A DNA stretch of 64,000 nucleotides, from positions 434,001-498,000 of the forward strand of contig JBLDXI010000017.1 in assembly GCA_047495785.1 (NCBI GenBank), in the 5' to 3' direction. This stretch comes from Lepidodermella squamata (taxonomy: Eukaryota > Animalia > Gastrotricha). Of the stretch, positions 22,983 through 64,000 are shown piece after piece. The translations under genes and the position numbers were made by a program. The number at the start of each line of letters is the position of its first letter. Positions within the stretch are counted from its first letter, which is position 1. Below the pieces are notes generated by a model, which ran no database searches, was not told the origin of the DNA, and saw only the letters and a list, made by a program, of their open reading frames with translations.

Positions 22983-23945
<963 letters not shown>

Positions 23946-31671: not shown

Positions 31672-34600
31672 ATGACTTACTACCCGGGCGGAAATTTTAC
31701 GTCAATATTCGGCACATTCAACGCCCCGCCTCTACTGCTCGGCCCCGGTCTGCCGCACGGCTACCCGCCGCCGTCGACAGCAGCCAGTCGGTGTTTGACG
31801 AAGCACGACGGACAAGCGGCCCAGTGCGATCAGGGCCTCATTCTACCGACCTGGCAGCCGCCGCTAATGCGGGGCGATGTTCCTACAACTACATTCCGCG
31901 CTTTTGTTTACATCGTCGCTTTGGGCTACATGCTGTTCGGCATCAACGTCATTACCGACCGCATATTGTCCGCAATCGAGGTCATTGTGTCGCAAAAACG
32001 ATCAGTCTCTGTGCGCTCAAAATCAGGTGAGAAAAATTTAATACAAACCTCCTCAAAAGTCAAAATTCGATTTTTTTCACGTATTTTGTGACACATATCA
32101 ATCGAATCAGCTTTCATCACTCATTCTTACTATCCTAGTCCTAGAACTCGTGAAAAAAATGAATTTTGCCGAGTTTTTTTCCAATTTTTGCAATAAGGAT
32201 TTAATTTTTATTCCTTTTTTTACAGGTGAGACTCATACTGTGGAGGTTCCATGTTGGCACCACGTTGTAGCCACCCTAACAGTCTACTGCATCGGTACCT
32301 CAACGCCGGAAATTTTCCTGCCAATCGTCGATGTGTTCAAACGCCGGTTCCAAGCCGATGAACTCGGCCCAGCCGTTGTAGTCGGCTCAGGCGCCTACCA
32401 CTTATTCCTAATCACCGGCGTGTGTTTAGCCTCGGTGAAAGAACCAGCTGGCAAGCCCATCCGAGATCTGAACGTGTTCTTCGTAACAGCTGCCTATGCA
32501 ATTTTCGCGTATCTCTGGATTTGGATGCTGGTCGCCGTAATTTCACCTGGGGTTGTTGAGTTGTGGGAGGCACTTATGACCCTAGCCCTCTTTCCTGCCA
32601 TCGTCTTCACTGCCTGGTTTGTTGAGCGGCGGTTGTACCGCCGGTACTACTATCGACTGAGAAACTTCCTGCGGTGTAACAAACAACCTGGGACCCCTGG
32701 AGAAGAGTCGCCTGCGGAAGATATCGGCGAGGTAGATAACGGCGCCATGTTGGATGGAATTCACGAGAGGCGCAGGAGGTTAGCACAGCTACTGCAACGG
32801 CTAAAGGTCGAATTTCCGGACAAAAGCCGGGCGGAACTCGAGGAAATGGCTGAAATGAAGCTTCTAGAAGAAATGCCGAAAGATGCTGCTTTTTATCGAA
32901 GTAAATATTTTTTGAAAATTTCAAACGAAATTCGAAACTTGGTTTTTTTCTAGTTCAAGCTGGCAAAGCGATATCTGGCGGCGGAAATTTAATTTCAAAG
33001 GAGAAAATCAAAGAAAAAATGGTTATTTTTCCATTCACTCAACTTTTGGGGAGAAATTCCGAGTTGGAAAATTGAATTTTTTTGGCTGAATGCTGATTGC
33101 TAAGAAATAATTTCCCAAGTTGTTAATGTTTATTCGATTTTTTTTCTCCGATTTTAGCGCGAGGAATTCCAGCGAAAAACGTCCTTTCATGTGATAGCAA
33201 CCGATCCGAACACCCAGTACATAACCTTCGACGCCCCTCGATACACGTGCATGGAGAGCTGCGGCCAAACCTTACTAACCGTCACAAGATCCGGCCCTGG
33301 AATCACCGAAACAGCCCTCAACGTTGAATACGAAGCCTTCGAAGGCACGGCCAAGTTCGGCGAAGATTTCGAACCGTCCAAGGGTCGACTGACCTTCCAC
33401 CCGGGCCAAATCAACGCCGATATAGCTGTCACCGTTATCGACGACGATGAATTTGAGGATGATAAAGAATTCTCCGTCCGAATCTATCGGCCACTTTTGA
33501 GGGCGTCGAAAGCTTGTTTTCAGTCGCTAATGGTACCTAGCCAGCCTGTTAATGAACCAGCTAGTCAAAAGGTCGAAATAGGCCCTATTGCCGAGGCGAC
33601 TGTTTGCATCTTGGACGACGATCATTGCGGTGTTTTTTCGTTCGAAAGCCCGGAATCAGCAATAGCTGACAATGTTGGCGTGGCGAAAATCAAGGTTGAG
33701 AGGTCAACAGGTGCGAGAGGTCGAGTTGCCGTGCCTTACAAGGTCATACCAGGCTCGGCTAAGCCTAACGATGATTACCTGGTCCTAGAGCGCAATTTTC
33801 GGCACAACGAACACGGCGCCGTGCTGCCGATGGTCGTGTTTGATAACGACGAATTTGAGGCGTATATCGAGATAGAGATTATTGATAAAAATCGAATCGG
33901 TGAGGTGGCGACGTTTTACATCGAACTAATGGAACCGGAGATTTTATCGTCGCCGCCGAAAAATCCGCTCGGCAATCCGTTGCTGGGTTCGCCGAGGTCG
34001 ATAAAACTCGGAATTTGCGAAGATGCAGAGCTGAAAGAAGCACTAGGTATATTCCCTGAACATTTTCCCGAAATCCAAAAAGAATCCCGGTAAATCTGAG
34101 GAAAATTTATGAATGCATTTTTTTTATTAAAAACTTGATTTCCCTAATATTTTATCGAATTTTTCGAGCTCTATGAATTTAGACTTCGACCACGAAATTT
34201 GAGGTTCCTAAGCTAAATATGGATCTCGAGCTTGGCCTCCATGCTAAAATTTGGTTTTTCGCGACGTTATGAAATTTTTTCAATTTTTTTTGAAAATTTG
34301 AAAATAAAAAAAAATTCAAAACGTCGCGGATTTCTGAATTTGGAGCATTAATTTAGTCAAAAAATATTTTTCGGATTTCGTACATTTCAAATTAAATTCA
34401 AATTTAAATTTAACATTTTCTGAAACTTGAAATAATTTCCGTTGATTTTAGATCGATTGCTGAAAATGGCGGATATTTCTCACCTTGTCGGCACAACCAG
34501 CTGGAGCGGCCAATTTAAAGAGGCAATCACCATCAATTTCGGCGACGAGTACCACGAGGGCGATAAAGCACAACGTCGATGGTTCAAACACATGTCGACC

Positions 34601-35389
34601 TACGCGGTATTCGGGCTCTCTCTACCCTGGCGGTTACTCGCCGCCGCCCTGCCGCCAACCTACCTCCTCCACGGTTGGCTGGCTTTCGTGTCTCTACTCG
34701 GCGTTCTTGGCTTCATGGCCGCGTTGACTGGCGATTTGGCGTCGGCGTTTGGCTGTACAGTTGGCTTGGACGACGCTGTTACAGCGGTTACGCTGATCGC
34801 CTTTGGCATGGGCCTGCCGGACACGTTTGCCAGCCGGCACGCGGCGATGAGTGAGAAAACGGCCGACGCCGCCATCGGCCACATCACAGGGTCTAATGCT
34901 GTCAGTGTCTTTCTCGGCATCGGTATTTCGTGGACTATCGCGTCCTGTTATCACCTCTACCACAATCAGCCATTCCTGGTAAGCAAAAATCAACAATCGC
35001 CCAAAATAATTCTATGAATTTTGCTAAAAATCGAAGATTCGCGAAAATTCAATTAAATTGAAGAAATTCCATCTTTTTTTTTTTTACAAAAATTTCAGCC
35101 TTCAGCTTTCAGTCCCTTTCTCTCCTCATTTCCTAAACTGATGGCGAATTTTTCCTAAAAAACTTTCCAGGTCCCTCCCGGAAGCATCGGCCTGTCGGTC
35201 ACGCTCTACTGCGCCTTCGCGACGGCCGGCATTTCGGCTCTGCTGTTAAGGCGGCTGCCACCGATCGGCGGCGAACTCGGCGGGCCCCTCGGTGTCCGCG
35301 CCATCTCGGCCGTCTTCTTCATTTGTCTGTGGTTCGCCTTTGTCGCACTGTCAATACTCGAAAATTACTGCATAATATCCGGCTTCTAG
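31672..35389 (+). CDS. NCX-like array copy A. Exons 31672-32026, 32226-32900, 32954-33021, 33158-34046, 34452-34978, 35171-35389
   Basis: GLILPTW; alpha-1 GTSTPE / GSGAYH; two Calx-beta domains (IDDDEFEDD, LDDDHCG); alpha-2 GMGLPD / GSNAVS; RR..GGELGGP; ENYC C-terminus. In-phase GT-AG introns. Confidence 0.93.
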
Positions 35390-37162: not shown

Positions 37163-40100
37163 ATGGATACCACCCCGGCTGTCGTCAACGTATTTGGCGA
37201 CTGGCGCCTGCCACCCGAAGCCCTGCCGCCAGAAGTGCATGCCATCTCCTCATCAAAACTCGGCATGGCGTCATGCAACGCCCCCAACGAATGCGAAGCC
37301 GGTCTCATCCTACCATTATGGTTGCCCCACGTAACATTCAGTGAAGACCCGTTTACCCTAATCTACCGGGCTTTCCTCTACGGATTCGCTCTAGCTTACC
37401 TCCTCTTCGGCGTCAGCATTGTAACAGACCGAATTATTACAGCGGCTGAGGTCATGGCTTCGCACAAGGTAGAGCGGACCATCAAGCTGAAATCAGGCGG
37501 AACGACCACTGTTAAGCAGCTGTTTTGGCACCCGGTTGTCGCCTCGCTAACTTTTGGCGTCGTCGGCACTTCATCCCCCGAAATCTTGTTGCCAATCATC
37601 GAAGTGTTGCACCGCGACTTTCAGGGATCCGACCTTGGTCCGTCGTTGATTGTCGGCAGCGGCGCGTATCACTTGTTCTTCATTACTTCCATATGTCTTC
37701 TGAGCGTTAGAGAATCAAAAGGGAAACCCATTAAAGATCTGCATTTATTTTTCACAACGGCTTCTTTCGCAATACTGGCGTATCTCTGGGTGTACTTGAT
37801 CATCGGAGTCTTCTCGCCAGGGGTCATCGAGTTGTGGGAGGCGCTAGTCACCCTGGCCATGTTCCCCGCCCTCATACTCATCGCCTGGATCATAGCCCGG
37901 CGGTTTCCGGTCAAACTCTGGCGGAAATGTTTGCGCCATTTGAGGCAAAAGGCACTGTCTGATGAGAAAAAACGACGAAGACGGCCCTCGCAGATGCAGC
38001 TCGGGAGTATTGGCCGAACGCCTAGTCAAGAAACTTCTGGCTCGGGAGTAGGTGTGACACGGCAGGCCAGTTTCCCGGAAGACTCAGCGGCAGATGATGA
38101 CGACGATGACGACTCGCCAGAGAACGAAAAGCGACGCAAACTTACTGCTTTGATGCAACGGCTCAAAAAACTGTTCCCGCTCAAATCTCAGCAAGAAATC
38201 GAAGGTTGAAACTCGCAATCCGCCTTAATTGTTAATTTCCGACATTTTTCGCCTGATTTTAGAAATAGCGCAGCAAGAACTCCTTGACGACACGGGCAAA
38301 AGTGCGGCCTTCTACCGGTGGGTTTTGCATGGTTACACGGCCTAACACTCTTAATAGATGCCTGAACCCCGTTTTAACATGCTCATTTTTTCCGCGGAGC
38401 TGATGTGATATGAAAGCTGATTGCTGATTTCATTCCTTCTCATCTCGAATTTTTGCTTCGTTAGCTAACGCTATGGAATTTTGAATATTTCGTAACCGTC
38501 TTACTGGTAATCCTTTAGGTTCTTCAATGCTCGGTTAAATTCGCGGTAATTTTGATACACCCTGTTCAGTAGCATAGGACAAGCTGTCTGCTATCATTAT
38601 TTCAATTTTAATACATTGAACACAGCCTTTGAAATCGTTGCTTGATACACTATGAATTTTAAATTTGCACATGCCTCGAAGTTTACTTTGCTATTCGAAT
38701 CTCACCCCGTAGATTGCAGGCGACTAAAGCCTTCTCCGGTACCAGAAACATGATGGATCTAATGCGAGAGAAAATGGTGAGTTAACTCAATTAGATTTCT
38801 GTTAACCTACCGGTGTATTTTACGCAGGAGGATCAAGGCCGGTCCTCTGCTATGGGTGCTGCGCCATCAAACGCAAACGCGCAACTTGTCGGATTTTCTT
38901 CAAGCCTGTCAACTTGCCAAGAAAGTTGCGGCACATGTGTGATCAAAGTTAACCGATCTGGCGCTGGGGTCAACGAGACAACGACTTTAGTAGAGTATGA
39001 AACTATTGAAGGAACGGCCAAGGCAAACGTGAACTTTGCTCCAACCTCTGGGCAACTTATCTTTTTGCCCGGTCAGCTTAGCAGCGAAATCAAAGTGAGA
39101 ATTCTTGATGACGGAATTTACGACGAGGTCTGCAAGTACTTTGAGATAAAGCTCTCGAATCCTGTCCTGCGAGAGCAATCGACTACTCTCTCTCGGTTGA
39201 TAGTGTCCCCGTCAAGACGCGGCTCTCCGCCTACTTTGCAGTTTAAGGTTAGCCGGGTCGAGCTGAGTATTCCTCAAACGAAAGTTTCCATTCTTGACGA
39301 CGATCACTGCGGAGTTTTCTCATTCGAGCGACCAGAGCAAACAATACCGGACAATATAGGAATAGGGACAATCAAAGTCATTCGGTCGATTGGAAGTAAA
39401 GGGCGCATTAATGTACCTTACAAGATAACACCTGGAACCGCCAAGCCAAATGCGGACTACATTGCTTCAAAATCAAAAGGAACTCTCTGCTTTGAAGATG
39501 GGCAAGCCGAGGCCAATATCGAAGTCACAATTATCGATAAAAATCGCCATGGAGAGGTCTATACGTTTTATATCGAGCTGCAGCAACCTCTTAAAGATGC
39601 CGACATTAAGGCGACTATAGGAGATCCGGTTCTTGGTGACCCAAAGGCTGTACAGATCGGAATTTGCGAAGACGAAGAAATGGAGCAGATGCTGGATCGC
39701 TTGCTCAAAATGACTGATATGGCTGAATATTTCATGTCAGCATCGTGGAAGTCTCAACTCAGGGACGCCGTAATTGTGTTCCGCGACGAGGAAGCTAAAA
39801 AGATTCCGATTTGCCAACGCGTGAAATACTACACTATACATGCTGTAGCATTTCCTTGGAAGCTATTAGTCGCACTCGTCCCCCCGGCTAGAATAATGCA
39901 CGGCTGGCTGTCGTACTGCACTTGCTTGTGTTACATGGGCTTCATAGCTGCGCTTATCGGCGACTGCGCCAGTCATCTCGGTTGTACGATTGGTCTCAAA
40001 GACACAGTTACAGCCATTACGCTCATTCCTTTTGGGATGGGTCTGCCTGATACTTTCGCGAGCAGGAGAGCTGCGATTCACGAAGCAACCGCCGATGCAG

Positions 40101-40479
40101 CGATTGGTTCCATAACAGGTTCTAATGCAGTGTCTGTCTTTCTTGGAATGGGAATGGCTTGGACAATCGGTGCTGGAGTTCGAACAATAAGAGCTGATTA
40201 CTTTCGCGTAAGATTCAAAATGTGAACAGTACTGCTTAACATTTACGATTTATTTAGATGCCTCCTTCTGATTTCGACTTCAGTGTAATGCTCTACTGCA
40301 CGTTGGCCAGCATCTGTGTTCTATTTTTGCTGCTACGTCGGTTGCCCCCGATTCGCGGCGAGCTAGGCGGCCCGTTCAGTCTTCAAATTTTATCAGCTCT
40401 TTTCATTCTATGCTTTTGGATTATTTTCATCGTACTGTCAGCTCTAAAGAGCTACTGCTACATAAATGGCTTCACATAA
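37163..40479 (+). CDS. NCX-like array copy B. Exons 37163-38204, 38263-38317, 38713-38776, 38828-40207, 40258-40479
   Basis: GTSSPE / GSGAYH, two Calx-beta domains, GMGLPD / GSNAVS, GELGGP. Confidence 0.93.
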
Positions 40480-42450: not shown

Positions 42451-45400
42451 ATGACTGAAAATGGTGGTGATATGATCACTGGCAACGAAACGAAGGCTGA
42501 AATTCTCAATGCAGCTTTTGCCGAGTCTACTACATCACTAACCACTGCTTTATTTACTTCAGTCGTCGATTTCAATAACAACAGCTCGTTACTCAACAAC
42601 ACCAAATATCTGTCCAAGTGTGTTGTCGAGCGGCGAAACTGCAGTAGCGCCATTATATTGCCATTATGGCTTCCTCAGGTCAGCGAAAGCTCAGAACCAG
42701 GGGCTGTCATCGCCTATCGAACAATCACGTACTCGATAATCCTAGCGTACCTCCTTTTCGGCGTCAGCATCGTGACTGATAGAATTCTTACGGCTGCGGA
42801 AGTCATTTTATCCCACAAGAGAAATGTCACTGTCAGGCTGAAATCCGGTGAAACGAAAACGAATAAAGTACAGGTTTGGCACCCCATAGTTGGCTACTGC
42901 ATATTCTGCACACCTGCTACTTCATCCCAATCACTGCTTTTACCTATTATAGGAGTATTTAGGCGCAACTTTCAAGGTAATGTTGTGAATAATGTCGGTT
43001 ACAAACCTAAATATTCGGTATTTCAGGTGACGAATTAGGTCCTTCTGTGATTGTCGGTACTGGAGCCTTTCAATACTACGTTGTTTTGGCTGTTTGTCTT
43101 CTCAGTATAAAAGACACTTTCCCGAAGCCTATTAGGAATCTTCACATCTTCTTCACGTCATCATTCTACACAATATTCGCTTATTTATGGATATTTCTCA
43201 TCCTGGACGAATTTTCGCCAGGAAAAATAGACTTATGGGAAGCAATATTCACGGTATGCTGATTTCCTGATTTTTCATTGATTTTTCATTGCCTTTTTTT
43301 TAGCTAATGATCTTTCCTCTTTTCGTCGTGTCAGTATGGCTGACTGCGAAACGCATTCCACAACGATTCTTTCATAGGATTGTGCGATCTTGTCGAGCTT
43401 CAACTGTTACCCCGTCTGACGGGGATGATTCTTCCGAAATGAGCGTCACGGTGGATGCCGATTCGCCGGAACAAGAGCAGCGGCGAAGATTTGTAAAATT
43501 GATGCACAAATATAAGCAAGAATACCCGGAGAAAACAAATCATGGTTTGAGTTCTGAAAAATCCTATTATTTCATAGTCATTGTACCTCTTTTAACAGAA
43601 TTGGAGCAAATGGTCATCCAAGAAATGGACGAAGAGCAAGAGAGGAGCGAATTGTTCTATCGACTTCAGGGTGGCACAAAAGGCTTATCTATATCCCATG
43701 GGATAATGCCAATGTCTGAGGAAGGCAAGGTATGTCATCCCATCCTGTTTTTGTCAACCCATCACACATGTTTTCCTACTAAATAGGACAACTTAAAAAA
43801 GACTCTAGAAGGCTTAAGTCAAAACGTTCAATCTGTCGGATTTGTCGCCCATGAAATAAGCTGCGCCGAGAGCAGCGGCGCAGCCACCCTTGTCGTCGAG
43901 CGGCGAGGCCCTGGATGTGAGGAGCACGTGCTTATGGTTAATTTCGACACAGTCGAATGCACGGCCAAGGCGAATTCCAATTTTCTTCCCGTCAATGGAG
44001 CTAAGCTGACTTTTTACCCCGGTGAAACCCAAGCTGAAATAGAAGTCTCAATATTGGATGATCATATCTTCGACCCTACCGCGAAATTCTTCAAAGTGAA
44101 GCTGTCTAATCCTATGGTAATCGGCGTTTCGGATTACGACTTCAGAGTTGAGTTAGGACTGCAAGAGTGTACTGTTTCAATAATGGATGACGACCACTGC
44201 GGAATCTTTGCCTTCGAAAGACAAGAGTTAGTCACATACATAATATTTTGCAATATTAATGATCATGTTTTTCCACTTTAGCTTGGCTGTTGCGGATGAT
44301 TGCGAGGTTGCTAAAGTTCCGGTTCATCGTACTGTCGGCTCTAGAGGAACTATTTGTGTTCCTTATCACATCGTACCCGGCAGTGCGAAACCGGGTGATG
44401 ACTATATTGCTCCTCAGAAAAATGAGGTCGTCTTCCAAAGCGGGCAACTTGAAGCTACCATCGACATACGAATCATCGACAAAGTTCGCAACGGCAAGGT
44501 TTTCACGTTTTACATCGAACTCCTTACGCCGAAGAAAGTCTCAGAGGACATCGAAAAGACCATTGGAGACCCAGCTCTTGGGGACCAAAAGCTAATCCAG
44601 GTTGGAATTTGCGAGAACGAGGAGATTCAAGAAGCTTTGAAGCGTATCGCGAAAGTTAATGATTTAGCTTCGCATATCGCAGCCTCGACTTGGAAAGACC
44701 AATTATTCGGCACTTTCACGGTCTATCCAGGAAACAGCGCCAAGGACGTGCCTTATATGACACTACTTTACGCCTATACCCTGCACGTGTTGGCATTTCC
44801 GTGGAAACTTGCGATAGCCATCATTCCACCGCCAGGGTTCGCTCAAGGCTATGTTGCGTATTTCTCGCTTCTTGGAGTTATGCTGATCATAACTGTCCTC
44901 GTGAGTGACTGCGCGTCCTATCTAGGGTGCACAATGGGAATCAAAGACACTATAACTGCTATCACTCTGATCTCTTTCGGAACTGGTATTCCGGGTCTGT
45001 TTTCTAGTCGAAGGGCCGCGATGCGGGAAAAGACAGCAGACGCTGCTATCGGAGCGATAACTCGAGCAAATGCCTCCACTAAGTTTCTAGGCATCGGGAT
45101 CGCTTGGACAATCGGCGCTGCTTACCAAATGGCTGTTGGAGATGAACGAGGATTTACGGTGAGATTTTTAATAACTATTAATGTCCCAGCAACATTTAAA
45201 AAATTGAAATTGCAGATCAAATCAAACGACGTAGGATTTAGCGTTTTGCTCTATTGCTCTTTCACAACGGTAGTTATTATTGTGTTAATGCTTCGACGAC
45301 TGCCGCCAATTCGTGGCGAGTTGGGCGGTCCGAACTGGGCTAAATATCTATCAGCCGGTCTGTTCATCGTACTATGGCTAACGTTCATCACTCTTTCCAT

Positions 45401-45458
45401 TCTGGAGAACTACTGTTACATCCGGATATTGGAATTGAGACATTTTCAATCTGCGTAG
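42451..45458 (+). CDS. NCX-like array copy C, lacking both core acidic residues. Exons 42451-42976, 43027-43253, 43304-43544, 43599-43729, 43787-44226, 44282-45158, 45216-45458
   Basis: Full NCX architecture in an open spliced frame; alpha-1 reads PATSSQS / GTGAFQ and alpha-2 reads GTGIPG / RANAST. Confidence 0.9.
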
Positions 45459-49515: not shown

Positions 49516-52328
49516 ATGAATAACAGTCTCGATTCGAATTCGTCAAATTTCACTGTAAATGCGTATTACTTCCACAAATCGGAATGTTCAGAATTCCATT
49601 GTGCTGGCGGTTTGATACTACCGCTGTGGAACTATACGCATCTGGAGGGTGACAACTACGAGCTTCAAATCGCGTACCGAGCCATTGTCTACGGTCTTGG
49701 TTTGATGTACTTACTTCTTGGGGTCAGCATAATTACTGACCGGATAGTCTCTGCCACCGAATACATGACCTCCCATAGACGGGCAGTTTCTGTGACCCTC
49801 AGATCAGGGAACACAACTACAGTCAAGGTTTGCATTAATTACTTTATCAGCCTTCATCTTTCTGATTGATTTTCAGCTCCCGATTTGGCATCCGACAGTT
49901 GCTGCCCTTAGTTTCGACGTCATTGGAACAAGCTCGCCTGAAATCCTTTTGCCCATAATTGAAATTTTCAAGCTCAACTTCACGATAGACAAGCTAGGGC
50001 TGTCTCTCATTGTAGGCAGTGGTGCTTATCGGCTCTTCATAATTACAGGTAACTTGACTGGCTTTTTTGGCATCATTCTCCTTGTTTTCTTTTGTAAAAG
50101 CCGTTTGCTTGTTTTCTGTTCGAGAGTCGAGCGGGAAGCCGATAAAAGATCTGCATCTCTTCTTCACAACAGCAGCTTTTTCAATTTTTGCTTATTTATG
50201 GGTTTATCTGGTGCTTGATGTCATATCGCCAAATTTGATTGAGATATGGGAGGCTATTGTCACTCTCAGTCTATTTCCAATCCTGGTTTTCACTGGATGG
50301 ATTGTGTCGAGAAGATTACCGAGCAGTATTGCCTCAAGAGTTGCTAATCTGTTCTCGAGATCTCGAGCCATATCACCCGCGACATCGCTAGCTAGCTCTG
50401 TTATTTCCGATCCAGACACTGATGTGGGTGATGCAGAGGAGGAAGCGTTCAAAAAGAATCGAATCCGGGCGAGAATGCGGGAGCTAAGGACCCTGCATCC
50501 TGAGAAAAAGCGTGATGAGTTGCAAGGTGTCGTAATCTATTTCCTTTTAGCTTCTTTTGTAAGTTGTCTTATTTCAGAAATGGCCAAGTTGGAAATTGGC
50601 GAGGATTTCCATACGCATCACACTTCTTCGCTTTACCGGCTGAGTCCTTCGAAGAATTCAACTCCCAGAACGCCCGGACTAGCAGCTGTTTTGGAAAGTC
50701 ACAGCAGGCCGGGGGCGGAATCAATGACACAGACAGTCGGCTTCACACAAGCCCGTCAATCTTGCATCGAAAGTTGTGGAACAGTTTCAGTATCTGTCGA
50801 AAGATGGGGCGCAGGCGTTGAGGACACAACGCTAACAATCGACTACGAAACTATACAAGGTTCAGCGAAAAGCAACGTCAATTTCAAAAGCATAGTTGGC
50901 CGACTGATTTTCGAGCCGGGCGAGAAGAAAGCTTTTATCGATGTGACCATTCTCGATGACGATATCTACGAGCAAGCGGCTAAATTCTTTAAGATAAAAT
51001 TGTCGAGACCAGTCATCGAGTCATCAAACACGCTGAGAGTACCGCAAGCAACCTTAGGCCCCGATATCGGCCCAAAGAAGTCAAAAGTCAGCCGAATTGA
51101 GTTTGAACGTGACGAAACTATCATGTCAATTCTTGACGACGACCATTGCGGAATTTTTCATTTTGAGAAGACTGAAATCGCTGTCCCGGATGATGTAGCC
51201 GTTGCTAGGATCAAAGTTGCTCGATCAATAGGAACAAAAGGGCGAGTTGTCGTCCCGTATCGTATCACCCCAGGTAGTGCAAAAGCCGGGATCGACTACA
51301 TAGCTTTACCCAATGGGTTATTAACGTTCCACAGTGGTCAGATGGAAGCTTTTATAGAGATCCGGATTGTTGATAAAGACCGATTTGGCGAGGTACACAA
51401 TTTTTATATCGAGCTGTTCGCGCCTAAGAAAGAATCGAGTGTTGACGTGAAGAGCACAGTTAGACAGCCGTCTCTTGGCCAGCCGAACTTGGTTCAGGTC
51501 GGCATTTGTGAAACAGAAGAAACTCGCCAAGCCCTGGATAGATTGCTCAGAACGCCAGAAATAACTGCCCTGGTGATAAAAAGCCGGTGGAGGGATCAGT
51601 TGCGTGAGGCTTTCGTTGTTGATGACGAAGACGAAAGTAATGAATCTAGTTCTTGTTTTCGTCGAATTTTTCTCAAATATGCGATCCACATAATATCTTT
51701 TCCGTGGAAATTTATTGTTGCGATTCTGCCTCCACCGAGGCTTTACAACGGATGGGTTGCTTATATCTCCTTGCTCTGTGTAATGGGCGCTGTGGCGGCA
51801 TTGATCGGCGATTGCGCCTCCCATTTCGCTTGCACTGTTGGACTTACTGAAACGTTAACAGCCGTAGCACTAATTCCAATCGGATTGGCTCTCCCAGACA
51901 CTTTTGCAAGTAGACGAGCGGCTATCTATGAGAAGAATGCAGATGCAGCGATTGGCGGCATCTTAGGGTCTAATGCAGCCAGTGTCTTTCTAGGAATGGG
52001 CATATCTTGGACGATTGACTCTATTTATCAGTCTGCAAATGGAGGATCTTTGACTGTAAGGCTCATTTTGTTGCTTCATCATCGTTTCATTTGTGTCACC
52101 CTATAGGTTACTTCCGGCGATCTCGGTTTCAGCGTAATGCTGTTTTGCACTTTCGCTGCAGCTGGTGTACTAGTTCTGTTGTTGAGGAGGCTACCTCCTG
52201 TTTACGGCGAGCTGGGCGGGCCGAACGGAATCAAGTATCTATCGGCTTGCTTTTTCCTCACTTTATGGGCGGTGTTTATTACTCTAAATGTTTTGGAAAA
52301 CTACTGCATAATTCACGTTTTCAAATGA
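49516..52328 (+). CDS. NCX-like array copy E. Exons 49516-49827, 49877-50048, 50101-50526, 50578-52055, 52107-52328
   Basis: GTSSPE / GSGAYR, two Calx-beta domains, GLALPD / GSNAAS, GELGGP. Confidence 0.93.
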
Positions 52329-52660
52329 TAGTCGATCGATAACTATGTAAGATGGATGCAAAGGCAATTATGATTGAATAGTAATAAAGGTCGCCGTGAT
52401 AATCACGCGTATGAAATTTGATGCGGGAGAATTTGAGAAAGTGAACGCGCAAGATTAAAGATCGATGAGATTCAAGCCTCGAGCTAGTTCGAGCGGATTA
52501 TTTGACACTATTTCTTTCGAAAAAAAGAGAGTGATTTGTCGGCTGGCTCCCTCAATGCCTCAGCTTCCGCAATATTTTTTTTCATTGAAATTCAAGTATT
52601 TTTATAGCAAAAAATCAATCCAACTGAGCTCTAGCTTAAAGACTGTTCCCTAGGTTTTTA

Positions 52661-55598
52661 ATGGGAATAAAACTAGAAAATATTACAAATTCTACCGCCG
52701 TACATGCATGCTATGAAGCAACTCAATGTGTTGATGGTATCATTCTACCAGTATGGATTAGGGACGAAAGTGAAGTTGGCGCATTACGATCGGTCGGAAC
52801 CTTCTACAGAGCGGTGATCTACATCGCTGGCCTCGCCTATGTTCTATTCGGTGTCAGCATAGTCACAGATCACATCGTTGAGATAACCCATTACATGGCT
52901 GAGCATAAGCGCAGTGTTAGCATGAAGCTGAAATCAGGGACTATAACAACTGTCAAAGTTCTTGTTTGGCATCCGGCTGTAGCAGCCTTAAGTTTTCACG
53001 TTATCGGAACAAGCTCACCTGAAATTTTGCTCCCGGTCATTGAAATGATCAAATTCCACTTTCATGGTAACGAACTCGGCCCATTTCTCATTATTGGAAG
53101 CGGAGCCTATCATCTCTTCATAATCACAGGTGCGTAACAAAATTTTTACGAGTATTCATGTAATTTGCTATCACTTTTAGCCGTTTGCATGTTCACTGTT
53201 CGAGAACCTGAGGTCAAAGCAATTAAAGACCTCCATTTGTTCTTCACAACTGCTGCTTTCGCGATTTTCGCTTACTTATGGGTGTACCTTCTACTGGACG
53301 TCATATCTCCCAATATCATTGAGTTATGGGAAGCGATTATCACACTGTCCCTCTTTCCGGCTCTGGTAACCGCGGGATATTTAGTTGCTCGGCGTAAACC
53401 TGCTGGCATTGTAACTCGTATAACAAATTTAGCTCTCAAGAGTAATGCTGTGCATCCTTCTCCACATTTACGCCCTCGTTCTGCTAACAACTTACTATCA
53501 GGCACATTGGACAACTTGAATAGTCTGGCGTCTCCCAGCAGCACGAACAGCATTATTTGCCCAATAAACTTTGAAATCGGCGACGAGGAAAGCAGCCGTG
53601 AAATATCCCGAGACTTCCTTCAACTGAAAAGAAATGGCTCTACTGCAAAGCGTTATGCAGTTGGCTTTAAAAACAAATTGGAGAGGCAACCAGAGGTGGA
53701 GATGGAGCGTGAGTTCAATTTTCAATAATTTCTCCAATTATTGTATCCATTACTTTCAGAGGCGGAGAACATCGAATTGGAACAAGAAGTTAAGATAACT
53801 TTCACAAATTACAGAACTCCTAGAGTTAGCCAAGATACCAAGTCGCCAAGCACTGACCAAAGAGGCTCAACGCTGCTCGATATTTTGGAGGCAAATAGCC
53901 GCATTGGCCCAGAAAGTTTAACCCAAGTTATTGGCTTCAAATCTGCGACGCAATCCTGCGAAGAGGGCTGTGGTTCTGTTTCTCTTATAGTCGAGCGATG
54001 GGGCGCTGGGATTGATGAAACAACGCTTTTTGTAGACTTCGAAACAATCCCCGCGACGGCGAAGGGAAACGTGAATTATAGGACAACAAGCGGTTGTTTG
54101 ATTTTTGCTCCTAAGGAGACTCAGGCAGACATTTTGGTCGATATACTTGATGACGATGTCTACGAAAAGGCTGCGAAAGTGTTCAAAGTCAAGCTATCAA
54201 AGCCAACAATATCAGCTCAACATCTAGTAACAGAAGCTGCCGCTATAGGACTCGAAATCCCAACTGCAAGGCGTGAATCTCTTCGACGGACAAAGTCTCA
54301 CACAAATGAATCTGTTTCATCATGGACACCCGCTCCGAAAGCGAAAAGGGTCAGACGAATTATGTTTGATCGAGATGAAATAGCCGTATCGATTGTGGAC
54401 AGTGATCATGGTGGCGTTTTCGCCTTCGAAAAAGCTGAACTTCCCGTACCAGACAACGTAGGAATAGCTCGAATTCGGGTAATAAGAGGAACTGGATCAA
54501 AAGGCCGGGTTATAGTACCGTACCGGATAACTTCAGGTACTGCCAGGCCTCATGAGGATTACATAGCCCAGGCGAACGGTTCCCTGACTTTCGACGACGG
54601 CCAGATAGAATCTTGTATCGAAATTCAAATTATCGACAAAAATCGTTATGGCGAGGTCTACAATTTTTACATACAGCTACAAACGCCTCGATTCGAGGCC
54701 GTAATAGACAAGGCCAGTAGGATCCACGCCCCCTCAATAGGTCATCCGCATCTCGTTCAGGTCGGAATATGCGAGAGCGAGGAGACGCAGGAGGCGCTGC
54801 ATCGATTGATGACTACGCCGGACTTGACACCGCAATTTGTCGGGCAAGAGTGGCGGGATCAGTTTCGCGAGGCTTTGAAAGTTCAGCTGATTGATGACCA
54901 CGACGATTTAGGATGCTTCCGAAGTCACATTCGTCCATACCTATTCTACGTTCTAGCATTGCCATGGAAACTAGCTGTTGCCGCGAAACCACCGAAGCGG
55001 CTACTTCACGGTTGGCTCTCATACTTATTCCTGATAGGAATCATGGCTTTAGCTGCAATTTTCATTGGGGACTGCGCGTCACACCTGGCGTGCACCTTGG
55101 GATTGAAAGATACTATAATGGCCATAACTCTCATTCCATTCGGAATGGGTCTGCCTGATACTTTTGCCAGTCGGAGAGCTGCTATTTTCGAAAAAACAGC
55201 CGACGTGGCTATTGGAGGGATTTTGGGCTCAAACGCAGTGAGTGTCTTCTTAGGAATTGGTCTTTCGTGGACGATCGGAGCTTCGTATCAAACTGCTAAT
55301 GGGAGTTTTTTGAAGGTATGGTTTACCTTATTATCGGTCAGATTTGTTTTATATTTGTTTCTTTCAGATGAACTCGGGGAAGCTTGGATTCAGCGTCATG
55401 CTCTACTGCACATTCGCATCGGCTGGATGTCTCGTCCTGGTGCTCAGGCGGTTGCCTCCAATACGCGGCGAGCTGGGCGGCACTCGAGTGGTGAAACACT
55501 TGTCAACAGCATTTTTCGCCCTTTTGTGGATCTTGTTCATCATTTTAAATATTCTTGAGAATTACTGTGTCATCGGAGGATTTAGGCAATCAAATTAA
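52661..55598 (+). CDS. NCX-like array copy F. Exons 52661-53129, 53181-53708, 53760-55315, 55368-55598
   Basis: GTSSPE / GSGAYH, two Calx-beta domains, GMGLPD / GSNAVS, GELGG. Confidence 0.93.
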
Positions 55599-56250: not shown

Positions 56251-59092
56251 ATGCAACTAACATATAACTCGAGCGTGAGTGGTCTGAATTCATCTTATTG
56301 CTTTGAAAGCCACACATGTGTCGCCGGCATCGCTCTACCAATTTGGAAACAGATCGCAAACGAAACCGACGCTCTCCGATGGCTAGGCGTAATTTACAAG
56401 GCTATAGTCTACATCGTCGGCCTGGCATACGTATTATTCGGCGTCACCATTGTCACAGATCACATCGTTGAGATTTCACATTACATGGCTGAGCACAAAC
56501 GAAGTGTCAGCTTGAAACTTAAATCCGGGACTACTACAACAGTAAAGGTCTTAGTTTGGCATCCAACTGTAGCAGCTCTGAGTTTCCATGTTGTCGGAAC
56601 CTGCTCAGCCGAAATTTTGCTTCCAGTCATTGAAATGATAAAAAACGATTTCCACAGCAGTGAGCTTGGTCCTTTCCTCATCATTGGAAGTGGTGCTTAC
56701 CATTTATTCATAATCACAGGTAAGTTTTCGTGTATTGCTCAGAAATCCTTCTCAGCAATGTTTTTACAGCTGTGTGCATGTACACTGTCCGTGAATCACC
56801 CGGCAAATCAATCAGAGATTTGCATTTGTTCTTCACGACAGCAGGTTTCGCAATATTCGCGTATCTTTGGGTATTCTTAGCCCTTGATGTCTTTTCACCA
56901 AATATTATTGAACTATGGGAGGCAATTTTCACTCTGTCACTCTTTCCTGTCTTAATTATAACTGCTTATCTGGTAGCACGAAGAAGGCCCGTGGGAATTG
57001 TTACTCGTCTGAATAATCTAGCGCTGAGAAGCAACGTAATTATGCCGGGAATTAGAACGCCATCTCGGGCAACATTATTCACCCCTGAAGTTCCGGAGAG
57101 TTCAAGGAAAAGCGACCCACAAGTTCAAGTAACGCAACAGAGTTTAAGCCCTTACCTAACTGTGGCTCAAAGCGGAACTTTGTCGCCGCAAGCTATCGAG
57201 CGGAGCAACTCGATCAACAGCCGTATTGATACTCTTGCTAAGGAACGACCAGACAGACCGAGATCTGAAATTGAAAGTAATAACCTAATACTTCACATTG
57301 CGATTTAATATTTTTTTAAATCAGGAATGGTCCACTCGGAATCTAAGTTATTTCGGCACTATCGTTTGCGATATAACATCGAAGAGAAACAGCCGGAAAG
57401 TCCTGATCATAGAGACTTGTCACTTCTTGCCATTCTCGAGGCTAACAGCCGTGTTGGGCCAGAGACTTTAACACAGGTAATTGGCTTCAAAACGGCCGAT
57501 CATCGCTGCGAAGAAGGTTGCGGTGCAGTGTCTTTAATCGTAGAACGTTGGGGAGCGGGTGTCGATAACACAACGCTGTTCGTAGACTTCGAGACGGTGC
57601 CTGGAACCGCAAAAGGAAACGTCAATTTCAAAACCACAAGCGGGTGTTTAATCTTTGGACCTGGCGAGCTACAGTCTGAAGTTTTGGTCAACATCTTGGA
57701 CGACGATGTTTACGACAAGGATGTGAAATGGTTCAAAGTCAAGCTGTCGAAACCAACGATAAACACGCAATTTTTGAACCCAAACCGAGTTCAGGTCATG
57801 GGACCAAAGCGGGGCAGGAAAGCTCGAAGAATGGACTCAAGGATTCTAAATGTCCGACGGATAATGTTCGATCGCGATGAAATCACTGTTTCGATTATTG
57901 ACAGCGACCATGCTGGCATCTTCGCCTTCGAAAAAGCTGAAATTCCAGTTCCGGATGATATAGAAGTCGCCGAATTTCGTGTACTGCGAACGATCGGCTC
58001 AAAAGGTCGCGTTGTAGCACCCTACCGAATAACTTCTGGCACGGCACTCTTGCATGAAGACTATATAGCTGAACCGACTGGTTCGCTAACCTTTGACGAC
58101 AAACAAACCGAGGCTTTCATAAAAATTCGAATAATCGACAAAAATCGCTACGGAGAGGTGCATAACTTCTACATCGAACTGCTGACGCCTAATTGCGAAT
58201 TGGATGCCAAAACCACGATCCATGCACCGTCAATAGGCCAGCCTCATATTCTTCAGGTCGGTATTTGTGAAAGTGAGGAAGCTCAAGAGGCTCTGAGGCG
58301 TTTGATGAAAACGCCAGATCTGACCCCTCGTATTGTAGCGAAAGAATGGCGCAAGCAATTCGTTGAAGCGATGAATATTCACCGAAGTGAAGACCGAGAG
58401 GATCTCGGATATTTCGCAGCTAATATCCGACCTTATATTATTCATTTCTTGGCTCTACCTTGGAAATTAGCCATCGCGATTATGCCGCCGAAATGTTTAC
58501 TCCATGGTTGGCTGTCGTACATATTTCTAATCGGAATCATGGTTATCGCAGCAATTTTCATTGGCGATTGCGCTACTAGTCTAGCGTGTACAATCGGCAT
58601 CAAGGAGCCGATAGTTGGAATCACGTTGATTCCTTTCGGACTAGGACTTGCGGATACGTTTGCTAGTCGAAGAGCTGCTATTTTCGAAAAAACTGCTGAT
58701 GTGGCGATTGGAAACATTCTAGGGGCAAATGCAGTCAGTGTCTTTCTAGGAATCGGTCTTTCTTGGACGATAGGCGCTGGCTATCAAAGCGCTCATGGCA
58801 GCGTATTGAAGGTTGGTTTAGATTTCCATATGATCCGGAAATTTATGTGCATTTCATCTTTTCTCAGATGAGCTCGGGAAACCTTGGTTTCAGCGTCATG
58901 CTTTACTGCACATTTGCCTCAGCCGGCGTGTTGGTGCTTCTTCTAAGGAGGCTTCCTCCAGTTCGAGGAGAGCTCGGTGGTCCGAAAATTATCAAAAATG
59001 CATCCACGACCTTTTTCGTCCTCCTATGGATCATTTTCATCATTTTAAATGTTCTTGAGAATTACTGCTTGATTAGCGGCTTTAAGCACTGA
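56251..59092 (+). CDS. NCX-like array copy G (closest to F). Exons 56251-56719, 56770-57276, 57325-58811, 58868-59092
   Basis: GTCSAE / GSGAYH, two Calx-beta domains, GLGLAD / GANAVS, GELGGP; same intron set as F. Confidence 0.93.
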
Positions 59093-59289
59093 TCGATACA
59101 TTTTTAATTAATAAAACAATTGCTTACACGAACAATTTGCCTACTTTCATTTTAGCTTAATCACTAGATTTGCCCGGGGTCAGATGTCAGGTGCATTAGA
59201 AAGCCTATACATCCTGTTTGCTATAGGCTGTTTTCCATATTAAAGCCTTCACTTCCGTCGGCTTGTCATTACATTAACGTCGCTTCGCT

Positions 59290-62148
59290 ATGAATGCCGT
59301 CAATCTTTCTCAGCTTAACATAACCATTAATTATTCAGATAACTCTACAACCGATAGCGACCAATGCTACACGTCCGTGATTCTGGATATTTGGGGCCAA
59401 GATGAAGCTATATTTCAGGCAAACTTCGTCGCTTTTCGGGTCATTGTCTATTTGGCCATATTGTCCTACCTCATGTACGGCTGCAGCCTTATAACGGATC
59501 AAATAGTTGTAGCAGCGGAGATGATTGCTACACAAAGACGGGCTGTTTATGTAACCTTAAAATCCGGGAATAGAGTGGCGACTAATGTAACAACTCCTGC
59601 TTAATTAATTTTTTATTTATTTTCTGCGATTTTTGAGTAGCGCGTTTTGTGGCATCACACAATTGCAGCTTTAACTATTTACGCTATTGGCATCAGTTCC
59701 GTAGAAATTTGCATTCCAATCATCAAAGTCGTTTCACTCAACTTCCAAGGAGATACGCTCGGGCCATCGTTAATTGCCGGCAGTTCTGCATTTCATTTCC
59801 TCCTGAGCACAGGTTAATTAATTACACGCTAATGAATATCGATAGATATTAACCTTTTTATTTAGGAATATGCCTTTGGGTTACACCCGGGTCAGCAGTT
59901 AAAGAGATCAGAGATAGCTACCACGTCCTCATCACAGCGATATTCTTTGCGACTACATACTTGGTACGCACTTTCCTTTTTTGAGATTTTTGCATCAGTT
60001 TCAATTCTTTGAAGTGGTTGTTTCTGATCTCGGATGTGATCTCTCCCGGGGTTGCTGAACTGTGGGAAGCGCTTCTTTTGCTCGCAATATATCCCGCTAT
60101 GGTCATATCTGCTTGGCTGGTGGCCCGCCGGATACCCGTGGGACTGGTTGCTAGGTTAAAATTTCTCATGATGCGGCGCAACGTCAACTTCTTACCAGCT
60201 CCAACCGCCATTTGGTTTACATCGTCACGCTTCTCAACGCAAATGAGTGTCACTAGCGACAGTGGAGAGCGAAAAAATTCGGTTATTCGAATATTGCAAC
60301 TTCAAAAAGAGCATCCTAAGAGGACAAGGGATGAGTTGGAAGGTAATCGCCCCTTTTCAAGTAAATCAAACAATTTGATGCTTTTTTGTTTTTTGCTCAG
60401 AAATCGCAAGATTGGAGGTCAATGATGAAGAGGAGCAGAGGGCGGCCATTTTCTACCGGGATCGAACTCGATCAAGGCATAAGAATGTCAGCTTAAAAGC
60501 ACGCAACTTGGACACCATTCTTGAAGGATTGAGCCGTGAAGGGCCGGAGTCTACGACGCAATGGGTCGGATTTAGGAAGAGCAAACTTTTGGTTGAAGAG
60601 GGATGTGGGGCTGTTCCGATTCCTGTCGAGCGATGGGGCGCTGGAATAGACGAGACAATTCTGATAATAGATTTCGAAACAATCCAGCTCTCTGCAAAAA
60701 GTAACATCAACTTCAAACAGTCAAATGGGTCGATCATTTTCGGTCCGGGTGAACCGCGGTGTGACGTGGTTGTGAACATTTTGAGTGACGACGTCTACAG
60801 CAAGGATGATAAGACATTCCGAGTCAAACTTTCAAGGCCGAAACTCGAGCTTAAATCTGCAACGAAAAGATGGGCATCTGCAAGAAGTTTGAGGCCGACT
60901 CTTTCGCAGATCGAGCCGGTAGTCCAGGTGAATAGGACAACATTCCACCGGGATGAAATTACTATCGCAATAATCGACAGCGATCAATGCGGGACGTTTC
61001 ATTTCGAGAAACGTGACCTGCCCTTGCCGGATGATATCGGCGCAGCTAGTATCAAAGTATACCGGTCGAGGGGCTCAAAATGCGCCGTTCTAGTTCCATA
61101 TCGAATAACACCCGGCAGTGCCAAGCTGAATGACGACTTTTTCGCAGAATCATCTGTATTGGAATTCTCCGAGGGTCAAACTGAGGCTTCAATCACAGTT
61201 TTTATCTTCGATAAAAATCGTTACGGACAGGTTCATAACTTCTACATCGAATTGCTACAACCTCGAACGGAAGCCATCAAGCCAAACATTCGACCACCCA
61301 AGCTTGGTTATCCGTATCAGGTTCAAGTCGGCATTTGCGAGAGTGAGGAGACCTTTGAGGCATTATGTCAGATGAAAAATTCGCAGAGCCTCTCCTGGCA
61401 AGAAATGGCAAACTGTTGGCGGCGGCATGTTTTCGACCAACTAATTGGTGTATTCTTCAAAAATCACGACGAGGACTCCATTCTAACTTGTGCGAAACCT
61501 TATTTTATCCACATGTTCTCTTTCCCGTGGAAATTGCTACTCGCAATCTCGCCTCCGAGTAGAATTTTTCACGGGTGGCCTTCTTTTATCACACTGTTAG
61601 CAGTTATGGTTCTGATATCGATTCTAATCTGCGATTGCTCGTCTCATTTATCTTGCCTAACCGGTGTGAGGGAGTCTGTGATAGGACTAACCATCATCCC
61701 TTTAGGCTTGGGTATGCCTGATACAGCTTTAAGGAGGAAAGCGGCGATCTACGAGAAATTTGCAGATGCAGCTATTGGAAATCTGATCGGAACAAATTTG
61801 GTCAAATCATTGTTAGGCCTTGCAATTTCATGGTTGGCTGGAGCAGCATACCACATCTCCTCCGGAGGGGATTATGAGGTAAGACAATGGTAATAAGAGC
61901 CTAATTGGAAGATTCAAGTATATTTTCAGTTAGCGTTCGCAAAGGATGTTGGTTTCAGCTTCTTACTCTGCTGCATAATGACGACAGCTGGCTTTGCTGT
62001 ATTGCAACTACGTCGGCTATCTCCCATCCAGGGAGAATTAGGAGGACATATTGTCTTGAAGTATATCAGTGCAATTTTCTTTCTATCTCTCTGGATCGCT
62101 TTTGTTACCTTGACTGTCTTGAAAAATTACAGCCTTATACAATTTTAG
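59290..62148 (+). CDS. NCX-like array copy H (highly diverged). Exons 59290-59586, 59641-59812, 59866-59963, 60015-60342, 60401-61878, 61930-62148
   Basis: GISSVE / GSSAFH, two Calx-beta domains, GLGMPD / GTNLVK, GELGG; open after splicing. Confidence 0.9.
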
Positions 62149-62315
62149 TCGAAATGAAATAAAGGATTAAATGACGTGAACACTCAGAAGTTTTGGGCTG
62201 CAGGCTAATAAACATAAATCGATGTGGTTTAATGGTTTGCCCAAAGGGTAGGGATTACAAAGCTGCTACTCACAAAATATATGTCATTGCCTCGGAGTTC
62301 TCGATTTTAGCAAAA

Positions 62316-64000
62316 ATGATAGATGCCGATTTGACTTGCAATGTCTCGGATCATTATGACAATGGATCGTGCCATTCAGAGCGGCATTGTGAGGGAGGTC
62401 TCATTCTACCCGTTTGGGGATTCTCAGAAGCTGAGGAGGAAATGAATCCCTACATCCCAATTATATATCATGCCTTAATTTACATAATATCACTGGGATA
62501 TCTTCTCCTTGGCGTAAGCATCATTACTGACCGACTAGTATCGGCAACTGAGTACATGAGTGACCAGAAAAGAAGCATCGAGGTCACGCTCAGTACGGGG
62601 AATTCTACCCTTATTAAGGTAACTCCTAAACAATTTTCGCAACCCGTTTTTTCACTCAGTTTCAGTTACCGATTTGGCACCCAAACGTGGCAGCACTGAG
62701 TTTGCATGTTATTGGCACAAGTGCTCCAGAGATTTTACTGCCAGTTATTGAAATTTTCAAACTCCGCTTTGAAACAACACACGAGCTCGGGTCTTCACTT
62801 ATTTTGGGAAGTGGAGCTTATCACCTCTTCATCATCACATGTAAGCAAGCGATTTGAAATTGCTACATTTAACCTAATTTTTGGACATTTTAGCTGTGTG
62901 TCTAGCTACAGTGCGCGGAGAAGCTCCAAAGCCAATACGAGATCTAAGATTATTCTTCCTCACAGCTGCATTCGCAATTTCAGCCTATCTATGGGTGTTT
63001 CTTGTCCTTGACATCATTTCGCCTCAACAAATCGAACTGTGGGAGGCTTTGGTCACGCTAGCGCTCTTCCCTACCCTCCTCGTGCTAGCCTGGTTGCAAG
63101 GCAGAAGGACTCCAGTCAGCCTTCTTTCGAGGCTAAACCACGCTGTCCACAAAAGTAGGTCATCAGCTGCAAACCACTTTCGACAGGCAGAATCTGACGC
63201 TGCGTTGAAGCGGTGGAGCATTGTAAGCAGCCGTGTTGAATTTTTAAAGCAAGAATATCCTGGCAAGACGTCGGAGGAGCTACAGGAGATTGCTAGCATG
63301 GAACTTGAAGGTATCGGAGATAACCGGCGACCCTCTGCTTACCGGTTTACGCGACCGAAAACCCCTGCGACGAAAAACCGAACCTTAGCAGACATTCTCG
63401 AGACTCACAACAGGGTTGACCCGGATAAGATTACTCAAAGCGTCGGGTTCCCGATAGCAACAGTAAACTGTGATGAAAACTGCGAGAAAGTCAAGATTCC
63501 GGTCGAAAGATGGGGTACTGGCCTAGACGAAACTTCCCTCTTTGTCGAATTCGAAACCGTGCAAGGTACCGCTAAAGACGGGGTAAACTTCAAAGGCAAG
63601 TCTGGGTGCATTTCGTTTCCTCCTGGAGAAAGTCGGGCATACATAACCATCGAAATCTTGGACGACGATGTTTACAGCAAAGACCCTCGACGTTTCAAAG
63701 TTAAGCTTGCTAAACCAATAGTCAGCTACCCGCGAGTTGAACTTCCAGCTTCCTCTACTCAAACGGCACAAGTTCAGCGGATTATCTTTGAACGGAATGA
63801 ATTGAGCGTATTAATACTGGACAGCGACCATTTCGGCGTCTTTTCGTTTGAAACTTATGACATACCTATACCGGACAACATCGGAGTCGCGAAAATCAAG
63901 GTCAGGAGGACTATGGGTGCGAAGGGATCTGTAGCTGTTTCCTACAGGATCACACCAGGTACCGCAAGACTTGGCGAGGACTACGTCGCTCAACCAGCTG
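62316..64000 (+). CDS. NCX-like array copy I, truncated by window end. Exons 62316-62618, 62666-62840, 62894->64000
   Basis: CEGGLILPVW, GTSAPE / GSGAYH, CBD1 (ILDDDVYS, LDSDHFG) and start of CBD2. Confidence 0.9.

Follow-up and report, generated by a model that had tools for sequence, protein, structure and literature searches.

NCX (SLC8) Na+/Ca2+ exchangers are among the most conserved transporters; a single NCX gene has been reported in invertebrates (PMC2408596), and three such genes in C. elegans (PMC4232491). Here we describe a tandem array of NCX-type genes in the gastrotrich Lepidodermella squamata, which lies in a window of 64 kb, the whole stretch of DNA that was analyzed (GenBank assembly GCA_047495785.1, contig JBLDXI010000017.1, positions 434,001 to 498,000 of the forward strand; a compact region with a GC content of about 0.42). 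The genes belong to a family that has been kept under selection over the long term in at least two species, each genome carrying 9-10 copies or more. Neither an NCX expansion of this kind nor its motif set was found described in the literature, and on the sequence comparisons presented below the family represents a new, apparently undescribed NCX subfamily within SLC8.

The ion sites against which such a family may be compared have been defined in NCX_Mj, where Sint is lined by A47, T50, S51, E213 and S236, Sext by A206, T209, S210, E54 and S77, Smid by E54, N81, E213 and D240, and SCa by T50, E54, T209 and E213 (PMC5133943). Occupancy of Sext closes the Na+-loaded state of this protein, and swapping nine of its twelve residues to the NCLX type produced Li+/Ca2+ exchange (PMC5133943). 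In addition, the residue of NCKX2 that is equivalent to D240 of NCX_Mj and N842 of NCX1 decides K+ dependence, and it has been proposed that "subtle changes in the ion-binding region" set specificity across the superfamily (PMC5749117).

Gene content and architecture of the array

Pfam searches found two Na_Ca_ex and two Calx-beta domains, in some cases together with Na_Ca_ex_C, in long forward-strand open reading frames (ORFs) at 32-62 kb of the window. PF01699 was present in N- and C-terminal exons of the copies, PF16494 in some of them, and PF03160 formed two stretches per copy wherever the region fell within one ORF. With P0001, the nearest database protein, as the tblastn query, nine NCX copies (A-I) were located on the forward strand, along with one minus-strand copy at the window start (gene Z). 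Gene models were built with a spliced protein-to-genome aligner written for this analysis, which allows for frameshifts, for reading through stops and for GT-AG introns in any of three phases, and their starts and stops were fixed by manual inspection. Small 5' exons and in-frame GC-rich "introns" in the first automatic models were recognized as alignment artefacts and discarded.

The first-pass annotation of this DNA had claimed nine head-to-tail NCX-type genes over 31672-64000, and all nine indeed splice into open frames of NCX type. Copy A (31672-35389) starts with its ATG at the first of these coordinates and encodes 896 aa in five exons in the spliced alignment. It is followed by copy B (37265-40479; about 880 aa), copy C (42451-45458; 889 aa, seven exons), copy D (46392-49241; 897 aa, four exons), copy E (49516-52328; 869 aa, five exons), copy F (52661-55598; 882 aa, five exons, with uncertain intron calls at 53418-53501 and 54227-54295), copy G (56251-59092; 895 aa, four exons) and copy H (59290-62148; 863 aa, six exons). 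Copy I (62316-64000) is cut by the window end, and its first 528 aa comprise transmembrane segments 1-5 (TM1-5), Ca2+-binding domain 1 (CBD1) and the start of CBD2. From ATG to stop the frames hold zero stops and zero frameshifts, and the chance of an 880-codon frame staying open is p about 4e-19. The eight complete copies are 863-897 aa long. Some exon boundaries in the variable cytoplasmic loop are uncertain (38318-38794 in B, and parts of F and G), and every alternative model is open. The copies "differ heavily", as had been noted, with pairwise amino-acid identities of 42-66%, the closest paralog of G being F at 66%. Eight complete genes and one window-cut gene thus form a real and intact multigene subfamily with NCX architecture.

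The introns of B-I are short (46-58 bp), AT-rich and of the GT-AG type, and those of copy A are longer (192-405 bp). The spacers D-E, E-F, G-H and H-I (49242-49515, 52329-52660, 59093-59289 and 62149-62315) measure 167-332 bp and the F-G spacer 652 bp, and AATAAA follows the stop codons of E, F, G and H. No NCX fragments or extra copies were found in the gaps between A and I, and nothing recognizable as a trans-splicing or operon signal was found upstream of the array ATGs. An N-terminal signal peptide is absent from the array proteins, the N-termini of which are short and rich in N-x-S/T sequons.

Each complete gene encodes the full NCX architecture, namely a 10-TM core, both alpha-repeats, an XIP-like segment, CBD1 and CBD2. 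P0001 aligns over its full length to human NCX1 (E 1e-136), and its AlphaFold2 model, based on a 56-row alignment and with a mean pLDDT of 86.3, consists of five-helix bundles flanking two beta-sandwich domains, with a beta-hairpin between TM1 and TM2. The top four Foldseek matches in PDB were cryo-electron microscopy structures of human NCX1 (E 2e-45 to 2e-51, about 890 aligned columns); the global TM-score against NCX1 is only 0.42-0.55 because the relative placement of the domains differs. The Foldseek matches also included the CBD12, CBD1 and CBD2 crystal structures, with TMt of about 0.9 for CBD1 and CBD2.

Substitutions in the ion pocket and regulatory domains

Every canonical NCX in our alignment, including Z and its orthologue L001c in a relative of the window species, carries ALGTSxPDTFAS, GSN[AS]VNVF and a TM3 ending in [FY]N. 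The family instead has x-x-GTSSPEILLP, GSGAYH, P-x-G-[M/L/T]-G-L-PDTFAS and GSNAVSVF. In copy A, for example, they appear as WH at 32255, GTSTPEIFLP at 32288-32323, GSGAYH at 32384-32401, AFGMGLPD at 34799-34828 and GSNAVSVF at 34889-34912. All the marks listed by the first-pass annotation (WH for WN, EILLP for EILLS, GSGAYH, GxGLPD and IDK[N/V/D]RxG in CBD2) were found. The four pocket motifs are almost invariant across about 230 NCX homologues from a protist to vertebrates, and the full family signature occurs only in the family. Five unrelated NCX proteins from the exhaustive search (P0134, P0143, P0148, P0192 and P0205) lack the TM3 Asn, with L, L, H, S and F in its place, and keep the other canonical motifs, so this position is not absolutely invariant outside the family.

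Residue numbers given here are those of NCX1 in the mature canine/human numbering, and were assigned to family positions by motif. The family keeps the carboxylates E113 and D814 (the copy C type excepted), the Sint and SCa ligands, and S110, S139 and S838. At Sext, A807P, T810M/L and S811G are found in nearly all members. At Smid, nearly all carry N143H, and most carry N842S (or G/T/K). Thus, the full canonical set of twelve ion-coordinating residues is present in Z and L001c and in no family member. S117P and the WN to WH change are further family-wide replacements. Of the columns invariant in canonical NCX, the family retains 104 and differs at 43, the latter being concentrated in TM1-3 and TM7-8. 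Individual copies deviate further: copy E has Arg at 143 (GSGAYR) and its alpha-2 motif reads PIGLALPD, copy D has Gly at 842, and copy H has Lys at 842 along with GISSVEICIP, GTNLVKSL and PDTALR, while keeping E113 and D814.

Copy C has lost both carboxylates, E113 being replaced by S within 42910-42945 and D814 by G within 44973-45002; its TM3 motif is GTGAFQ and its TM8 motif RANASTKF. The same losses are found in its orthologue L003c (L003:6864-9520), in which the corresponding motifs include IPATSSQTLFLP, SFGLCLPGTF and RSNVSTKF; position 113 is S or T across the pair, both proteins have Gln at 143, and their TM8 follows the pattern R-x-N-x-S-T-K-F. Both carboxylates are present in the sister type, P0003. 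The losses shared by C and L003c indicate that the C-type pocket had been dismantled by the time the two species diverged, and it has been kept in that form since. Judged from these motifs, copy C most likely no longer transports and would act as a regulator or sensor.

The regulatory domains have also been altered. In CBD1, E385, D446/447 and D498-500 are kept in A-E, D421 is lost, D499 is replaced by Ser in F-I, and the E454 position is occupied by Lys or Arg in every family member. In CBD2, Asp takes the place of E516, and D-K-[N/D/V]-R-x-G that of the acidic EEYE segment. From these residues, CBD1 may have retained Ca2+ binding in A-E, and CBD2 is probably not binding Ca2+.

Phylogeny, selection and genomic context

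Relatives were sought by a word-index search and by an exhaustive HMMER search of 1.84 billion representatives with P0001 as the query, and the same picture emerged from both. Family-level matches (42-57% identity) were only ENA metagenome proteins (P0001, P0002, P0003, P0082, P0089, P0095 and P0098), and the next matches were canonical NCX proteins of a nematode, a ray, fish, the rotifer Seison and a mite. All metagenome family proteins came from one eukaryote in three or four related samples. This relative carries at least ten family copies: contig k141_598481 holds at least seven of them head to tail (L007a, L007b, L007c, P0082, L003b, L003c and P0003), and on a second contig P0001, the A-type copy L001b and the canonical L001c lie side by side. 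The alignment of L001b (L001:12690-15590, minus strand) required a frameshift, and the gene caller gives products of 367 and 591 aa; the break may stem from misassembly, or from an intron that is very short or lacks GT-AG ends. Of two family alignments, A2 proved too variable along its length to be scanned with, and A3 was used; a scan of JGI metagenome contigs with A3 returned 80 NCX loci, all with canonical motifs.

In the main tree (IQ-TREE, LG+C20, 33 rows), which was rooted with a protist NCX, the family is placed among bilaterian NCX, and a single clade with 100/100 support and a stem of about 1.0 substitutions per site unites A-I with the metagenome copies. The same clade received SH-aLRT 100 in two quick trees with more rows. 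The single founding duplicate and the strong divergence proposed by the first-pass annotation are thus borne out, since the family is one clade outside any named NCX group, at 37-41% identity to canonical NCX. Within the clade, the window and relative copies interleave as orthologue pairs: A with L001b (66% identity, SH-aLRT 100), B with L003b (52%), C with L003c (47%), D with P0002 (57%), and E-I jointly with P0001 (47-50%). Gene order is partly kept between the two species. The interleaved pairs indicate that the species split was preceded by the formation of at least five family types. Orthologues at 47-66% identity, together with the lack of dead copies, show that the array is old and stable, which argues against birth-and-death turnover. 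Only the E-I group is a later expansion in the window lineage.

Orthologue path lengths are 0.29 for Z and L001c vs 0.7-1.6 for family pairs, so that the family evolves at about 2-5 times the rate of the canonical gene in this species pair. Copy A is the slowest-evolving member. Copy H (59290-62148) has the longest branch in the window array (about 1.2, about three times those of its siblings), and it may be under relaxed or directional selection. In the relative, L007a (L007:1278-3852) has an end branch of 2.5 and no recognizable pocket motifs, yet its frame is open over 824 aa.

Synonymous divergence (dS) was saturated in every paralog pair by both NG86 and YN00; for F and G, non-synonymous divergence (dN) was 0.26 with no finite dS. 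The pairwise dN/dS comparison proposed by the first-pass annotation therefore gave no finite ratio. As it failed through saturation, differences in public reads were used for selection, and these did reveal purifying selection. They comprise 40 listed sites that differ between the window and the public contigs of two sequencing runs, X1 and X2, and were placed on the E and F models. Thirty-one were synonymous, one was a V to I change and eight were non-coding, five of the latter in the predicted last intron of F. All 10 listed coding differences of copy E and 21 of the 22 in copy F, where the V to I change occurs, are synonymous. Given that 76% of the possible single-base changes in E and F are non-synonymous, the observed 31:1 has a binomial p of about 1e-18. 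The nearly exclusive synonymy of the listed coding differences confirms the reading frames of E and F, and purifying selection on the array is strong.

A SMART complementary DNA (cDNA) adaptor is present in the loose ends of run X1. Coverage by this run extends over E at 49601-52359 and the 3' half of F from about 53400, with zero depth at 52401-53400, and this pattern fits 3'-biased cDNA rather than genomic contamination. The subfamily is therefore at least partly transcribed. Displayed read joints were considered as splice evidence and set aside, being "opposite strand" artefacts only. Untranscribed copies with dN/dS near 1, the outcome that the first-pass annotation had set against its own proposal, are not what was found, given E and F in the cDNA run and 31 synonymous differences vs one non-synonymous. 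Likewise, its view that the copies are not pseudogenes agrees with the open frames, the saturated dS, the 31:1 differences and the gaps free of fragments. In run X2, two versions, each at roughly half depth, were seen at 50658-50930, 51671-51743 and 54460-54589; they differ almost only at third codon positions (e.g., 20 differences in a 273-bp contig), which suggests a very heterozygous individual or two strains.

The canonical gene Z (40-3339, minus strand), which the first-pass annotation did not include, was identified by tblastn and spliced alignment as the N-terminal third of an NCX (SLC8) gene with large introns, cut at the window start. It carries the canonical motifs, including GSAAYN, and has a short branch in the tree; its orthologue in the relative, L001c, is 78% identical. 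Z is the ordinary exchanger of this genome. A housekeeping block (window positions 4000-31000) separates it from the array, with genes for an EF-G-like GTPase (11598-14012), a weak Cpn60/TCP1 match (17219-18118) and Menin (18290-20011) on the minus strand, and for an ApaG-domain protein (21893-22615), NKAP (22983-23945), Rpc34 (24484-25077) and Rrp15 (25551-26222) on the plus strand. The Menin shows no more than 40% identity to its best matches, which are from hemichordates, molluscs and arthropods. No tRNA genes or Rfam families were found in the window. On a third contig of the relative, the EF-G-like gene directly adjoins the D-type copy P0002 (L006), and the neighborhood is thus partly syntenic with the window. 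In both species a canonical NCX is linked to divergent copies, Z in the window and L001c beside P0001 and L001b. The Seison NCX grouped with the local canonical NCX in the main tree (97/97), a grouping not resolved in the two quick trees, and the best Atlas structural match was a rotifer-dominated NCX cluster; both are weak hints of a rotifer-like affinity.

Functional interpretation and comparison with known exchangers

We consider it probable, with moderate confidence, that these genes form an old, maintained NCX subfamily that would perform Ca2+/cation exchange with altered coupling, and in which copy C would be non-transporting. The integrity, monophyly, age, purifying selection, fold and site substitutions described above show an actively maintained tandem array of a lineage-restricted, fast-evolving branch of SLC8; its proteins would be working Ca2+/cation exchangers, with a coupling ion or stoichiometry unlike the canonical 3Na+:1Ca2+. 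Their regulation would proceed mainly via the partly retained CBD1, and the paralogs may be specialized by tissue or ion conditions. That the family still moves Ca2+ we infer from the Ca2+ site, which is conserved under selection, and the remodelled pocket argues for altered ion handling. An ion-handling or ion-sensing system on the NCX fold is plausible.

Several points weigh against this interpretation. Transport and the change in coupling are read from sequence and predicted structure, and the RNA evidence comes from E and F, in short contigs, with no GT-AG splice joints among those displayed. Positions 810 (M/L/T) and 842 (S/G/T/K/N) vary among paralogs, which fits relaxed constraint equally as well as tuning. 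T810 contributes its backbone to SCa, and a change to M or L may therefore be tolerated. Exchange rates of NCX_Mj were unaffected by N81A, and the D240N mutant was fully active (PMC5133943), so the two Smid substitutions alone need not change function. As to origin, the canonical pair is weakly placed as sister of the family (81/16 in the main tree, 84 in one quick tree and a polytomy in the other), and the case for descent from the local canonical gene is therefore mainly that the two are physically linked in both species; a duplication of this canonical NCX gene probably gave rise to the subfamily.

It is possible, if tentative, that the subfamily would no longer be a Na+/Ca2+ exchanger at all: Ca2+ could be coupled to another ion such as H+ or with another stoichiometry, or another divalent such as a transition metal could be moved, with paralogs tuned to different ions and the C type serving as a non-transporting partner or sensor. 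The central His, the Met/Leu and Gly at the third Na+ site, and the Ser at the NCKX K+-dependence position form the pocket basis of this idea. The main rival to altered coupling holds that the copies are ordinary 3Na+:1Ca2+ exchangers, fast-evolving tissue-specific isoforms in which the pocket changes are neutral or only kinetic. It would explain why seven of the eight complete copies keep the SCa and Sint ligands and both carboxylates, and why domain order and fold are unchanged; it also agrees with the unimpaired NCX_Mj mutants mentioned above and with the few unrelated NCX homologues that also lack the TM3 Asn. We nevertheless regard it as rather unlikely, since every family member has all four of the near-invariant motif blocks rewritten, blocks that the local canonical gene retains. 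In addition, S811, a side-chain ligand of Sext (S210 in NCX_Mj), has been lost, A807 is changed to Pro, and the 43 replaced canonical-invariant columns (vs 104 kept) are concentrated in TM1-3 and TM7-8. Moreover, the retention of a canonical NCX alongside suggests another role for the family.

The remaining explanations depart further from exchange. If the whole family had given up transport in favor of Ca2+ sensing or a regulatory function, for instance as partners of the canonical NCX, the retained CBD domains would be expected, as would copy C and L003c, which lack E113 and D814 yet are intact in both species, and L007a, which has lost all recognizable pocket motifs. This seems improbable for the family at large, because A, B, D, E, F, G, H and most relatives retain both carboxylates, the Sint ligands and the glycines and prolines of the alpha-repeats, a conservation hard to explain without ion binding in the pocket. 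Degradation has also gone further in the regulatory CBD Ca2+ sites (E454K throughout the family, loss of D421, D499S in F-I and loss of the CBD2 acidic cluster) than in the transport core. Only for copy C is the idea of a sensor truly supported. The first-pass annotation had likened the array to a chemoreceptor or detoxification family, i.e., to rapid, recent, lineage-specific birth-and-death turnover driven by the environment. The tandem layout, the high copy number, the low identity between copies, the E-I expansion in the window lineage, and soft pocket ligands (His, Met) that could suit transition metals would all agree with this analogy. However, A, B, C, D and the E-I group each pair with an orthologue in a distant relative at only 47-66% identity, pseudogene remnants are absent, dS is saturated even in the youngest pair, and present-day purifying selection is strong; we therefore hold such turnover to be very unlikely. 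Decaying or neutral duplicates, unexpressed pseudogenes that merely look intact, are barely conceivable, and for E and F this explanation is refuted. In its favor one could cite the long branch of H and the restriction of cDNA evidence to E and F, against which stand eight frames of about 880 codons that remain open despite saturated synonymous sites, the 31:1 listed differences, the cDNA over E and F, and the orthologues retained in the distant relative.

Long kept under selection, and with the ligands of the third Na+ site and the central site rewritten around a retained Ca2+ site, the family constitutes a natural mutagenesis series for the open question of what sets ion selectivity and stoichiometry in CaCA proteins, with the canonical Z of the same genome as an internal control. 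Copy C, if confirmed, would be a pseudo-transporter with a retained function.

Among described systems, the family stands closest to canonical NCX/SLC8, as represented by human NCX1 (PDB 8SGI/8JP0), Drosophila CALX and Z, with which it shares the domain order of TM1-5, XIP-like segment, CBD1, CBD2 and TM6-10. It differs from them in an identity of only 37-41%, in its stem of about 1.0 substitutions per site, in the absence of an N-terminal signal peptide, and in the replacements N143H, A807P, T810M/L, S811G, N842S, WN to WH, S117P, E454K and the exchange of the CBD2 acidic cluster. It also differs in copy number, with at least nine copies per genome vs the one or three NCX genes reported in invertebrates. 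The family-wide Lys or Arg at the E454 position recalls the E454K-CBD1 of NCX1 (PDB 3GIN), which is among the best CBD1 structural matches (TMt 0.93); 3GIN is, however, a laboratory mutant with its other Ca2+ sites intact, whereas the family has also lost D421 and, in F-I, D499. No copy belongs to NCKX (SLC24), CCX/NCLX or CAX, as two Calx-beta domains are present in all of them and NCX proteins are their nearest matches in both sequence and structure. Nevertheless, two of these branches offer instructive parallels. The position of Asp575 in NCKX2 (SLC24A2) is the one altered to S, G, T or K in the family; NCKX proteins lack the CBD domains, of which the family has two, and as the family residue is not Asp, K+ coupling is not predicted by the analogy. 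NCLX/CCX (SLC8B1), in turn, lacks Calx-beta domains and belongs to another CaCA branch, and the family changes only about four of the twelve positions, and different ones; it provides a precedent in that ligand replacement on an unchanged CaCA scaffold alters ion selectivity.

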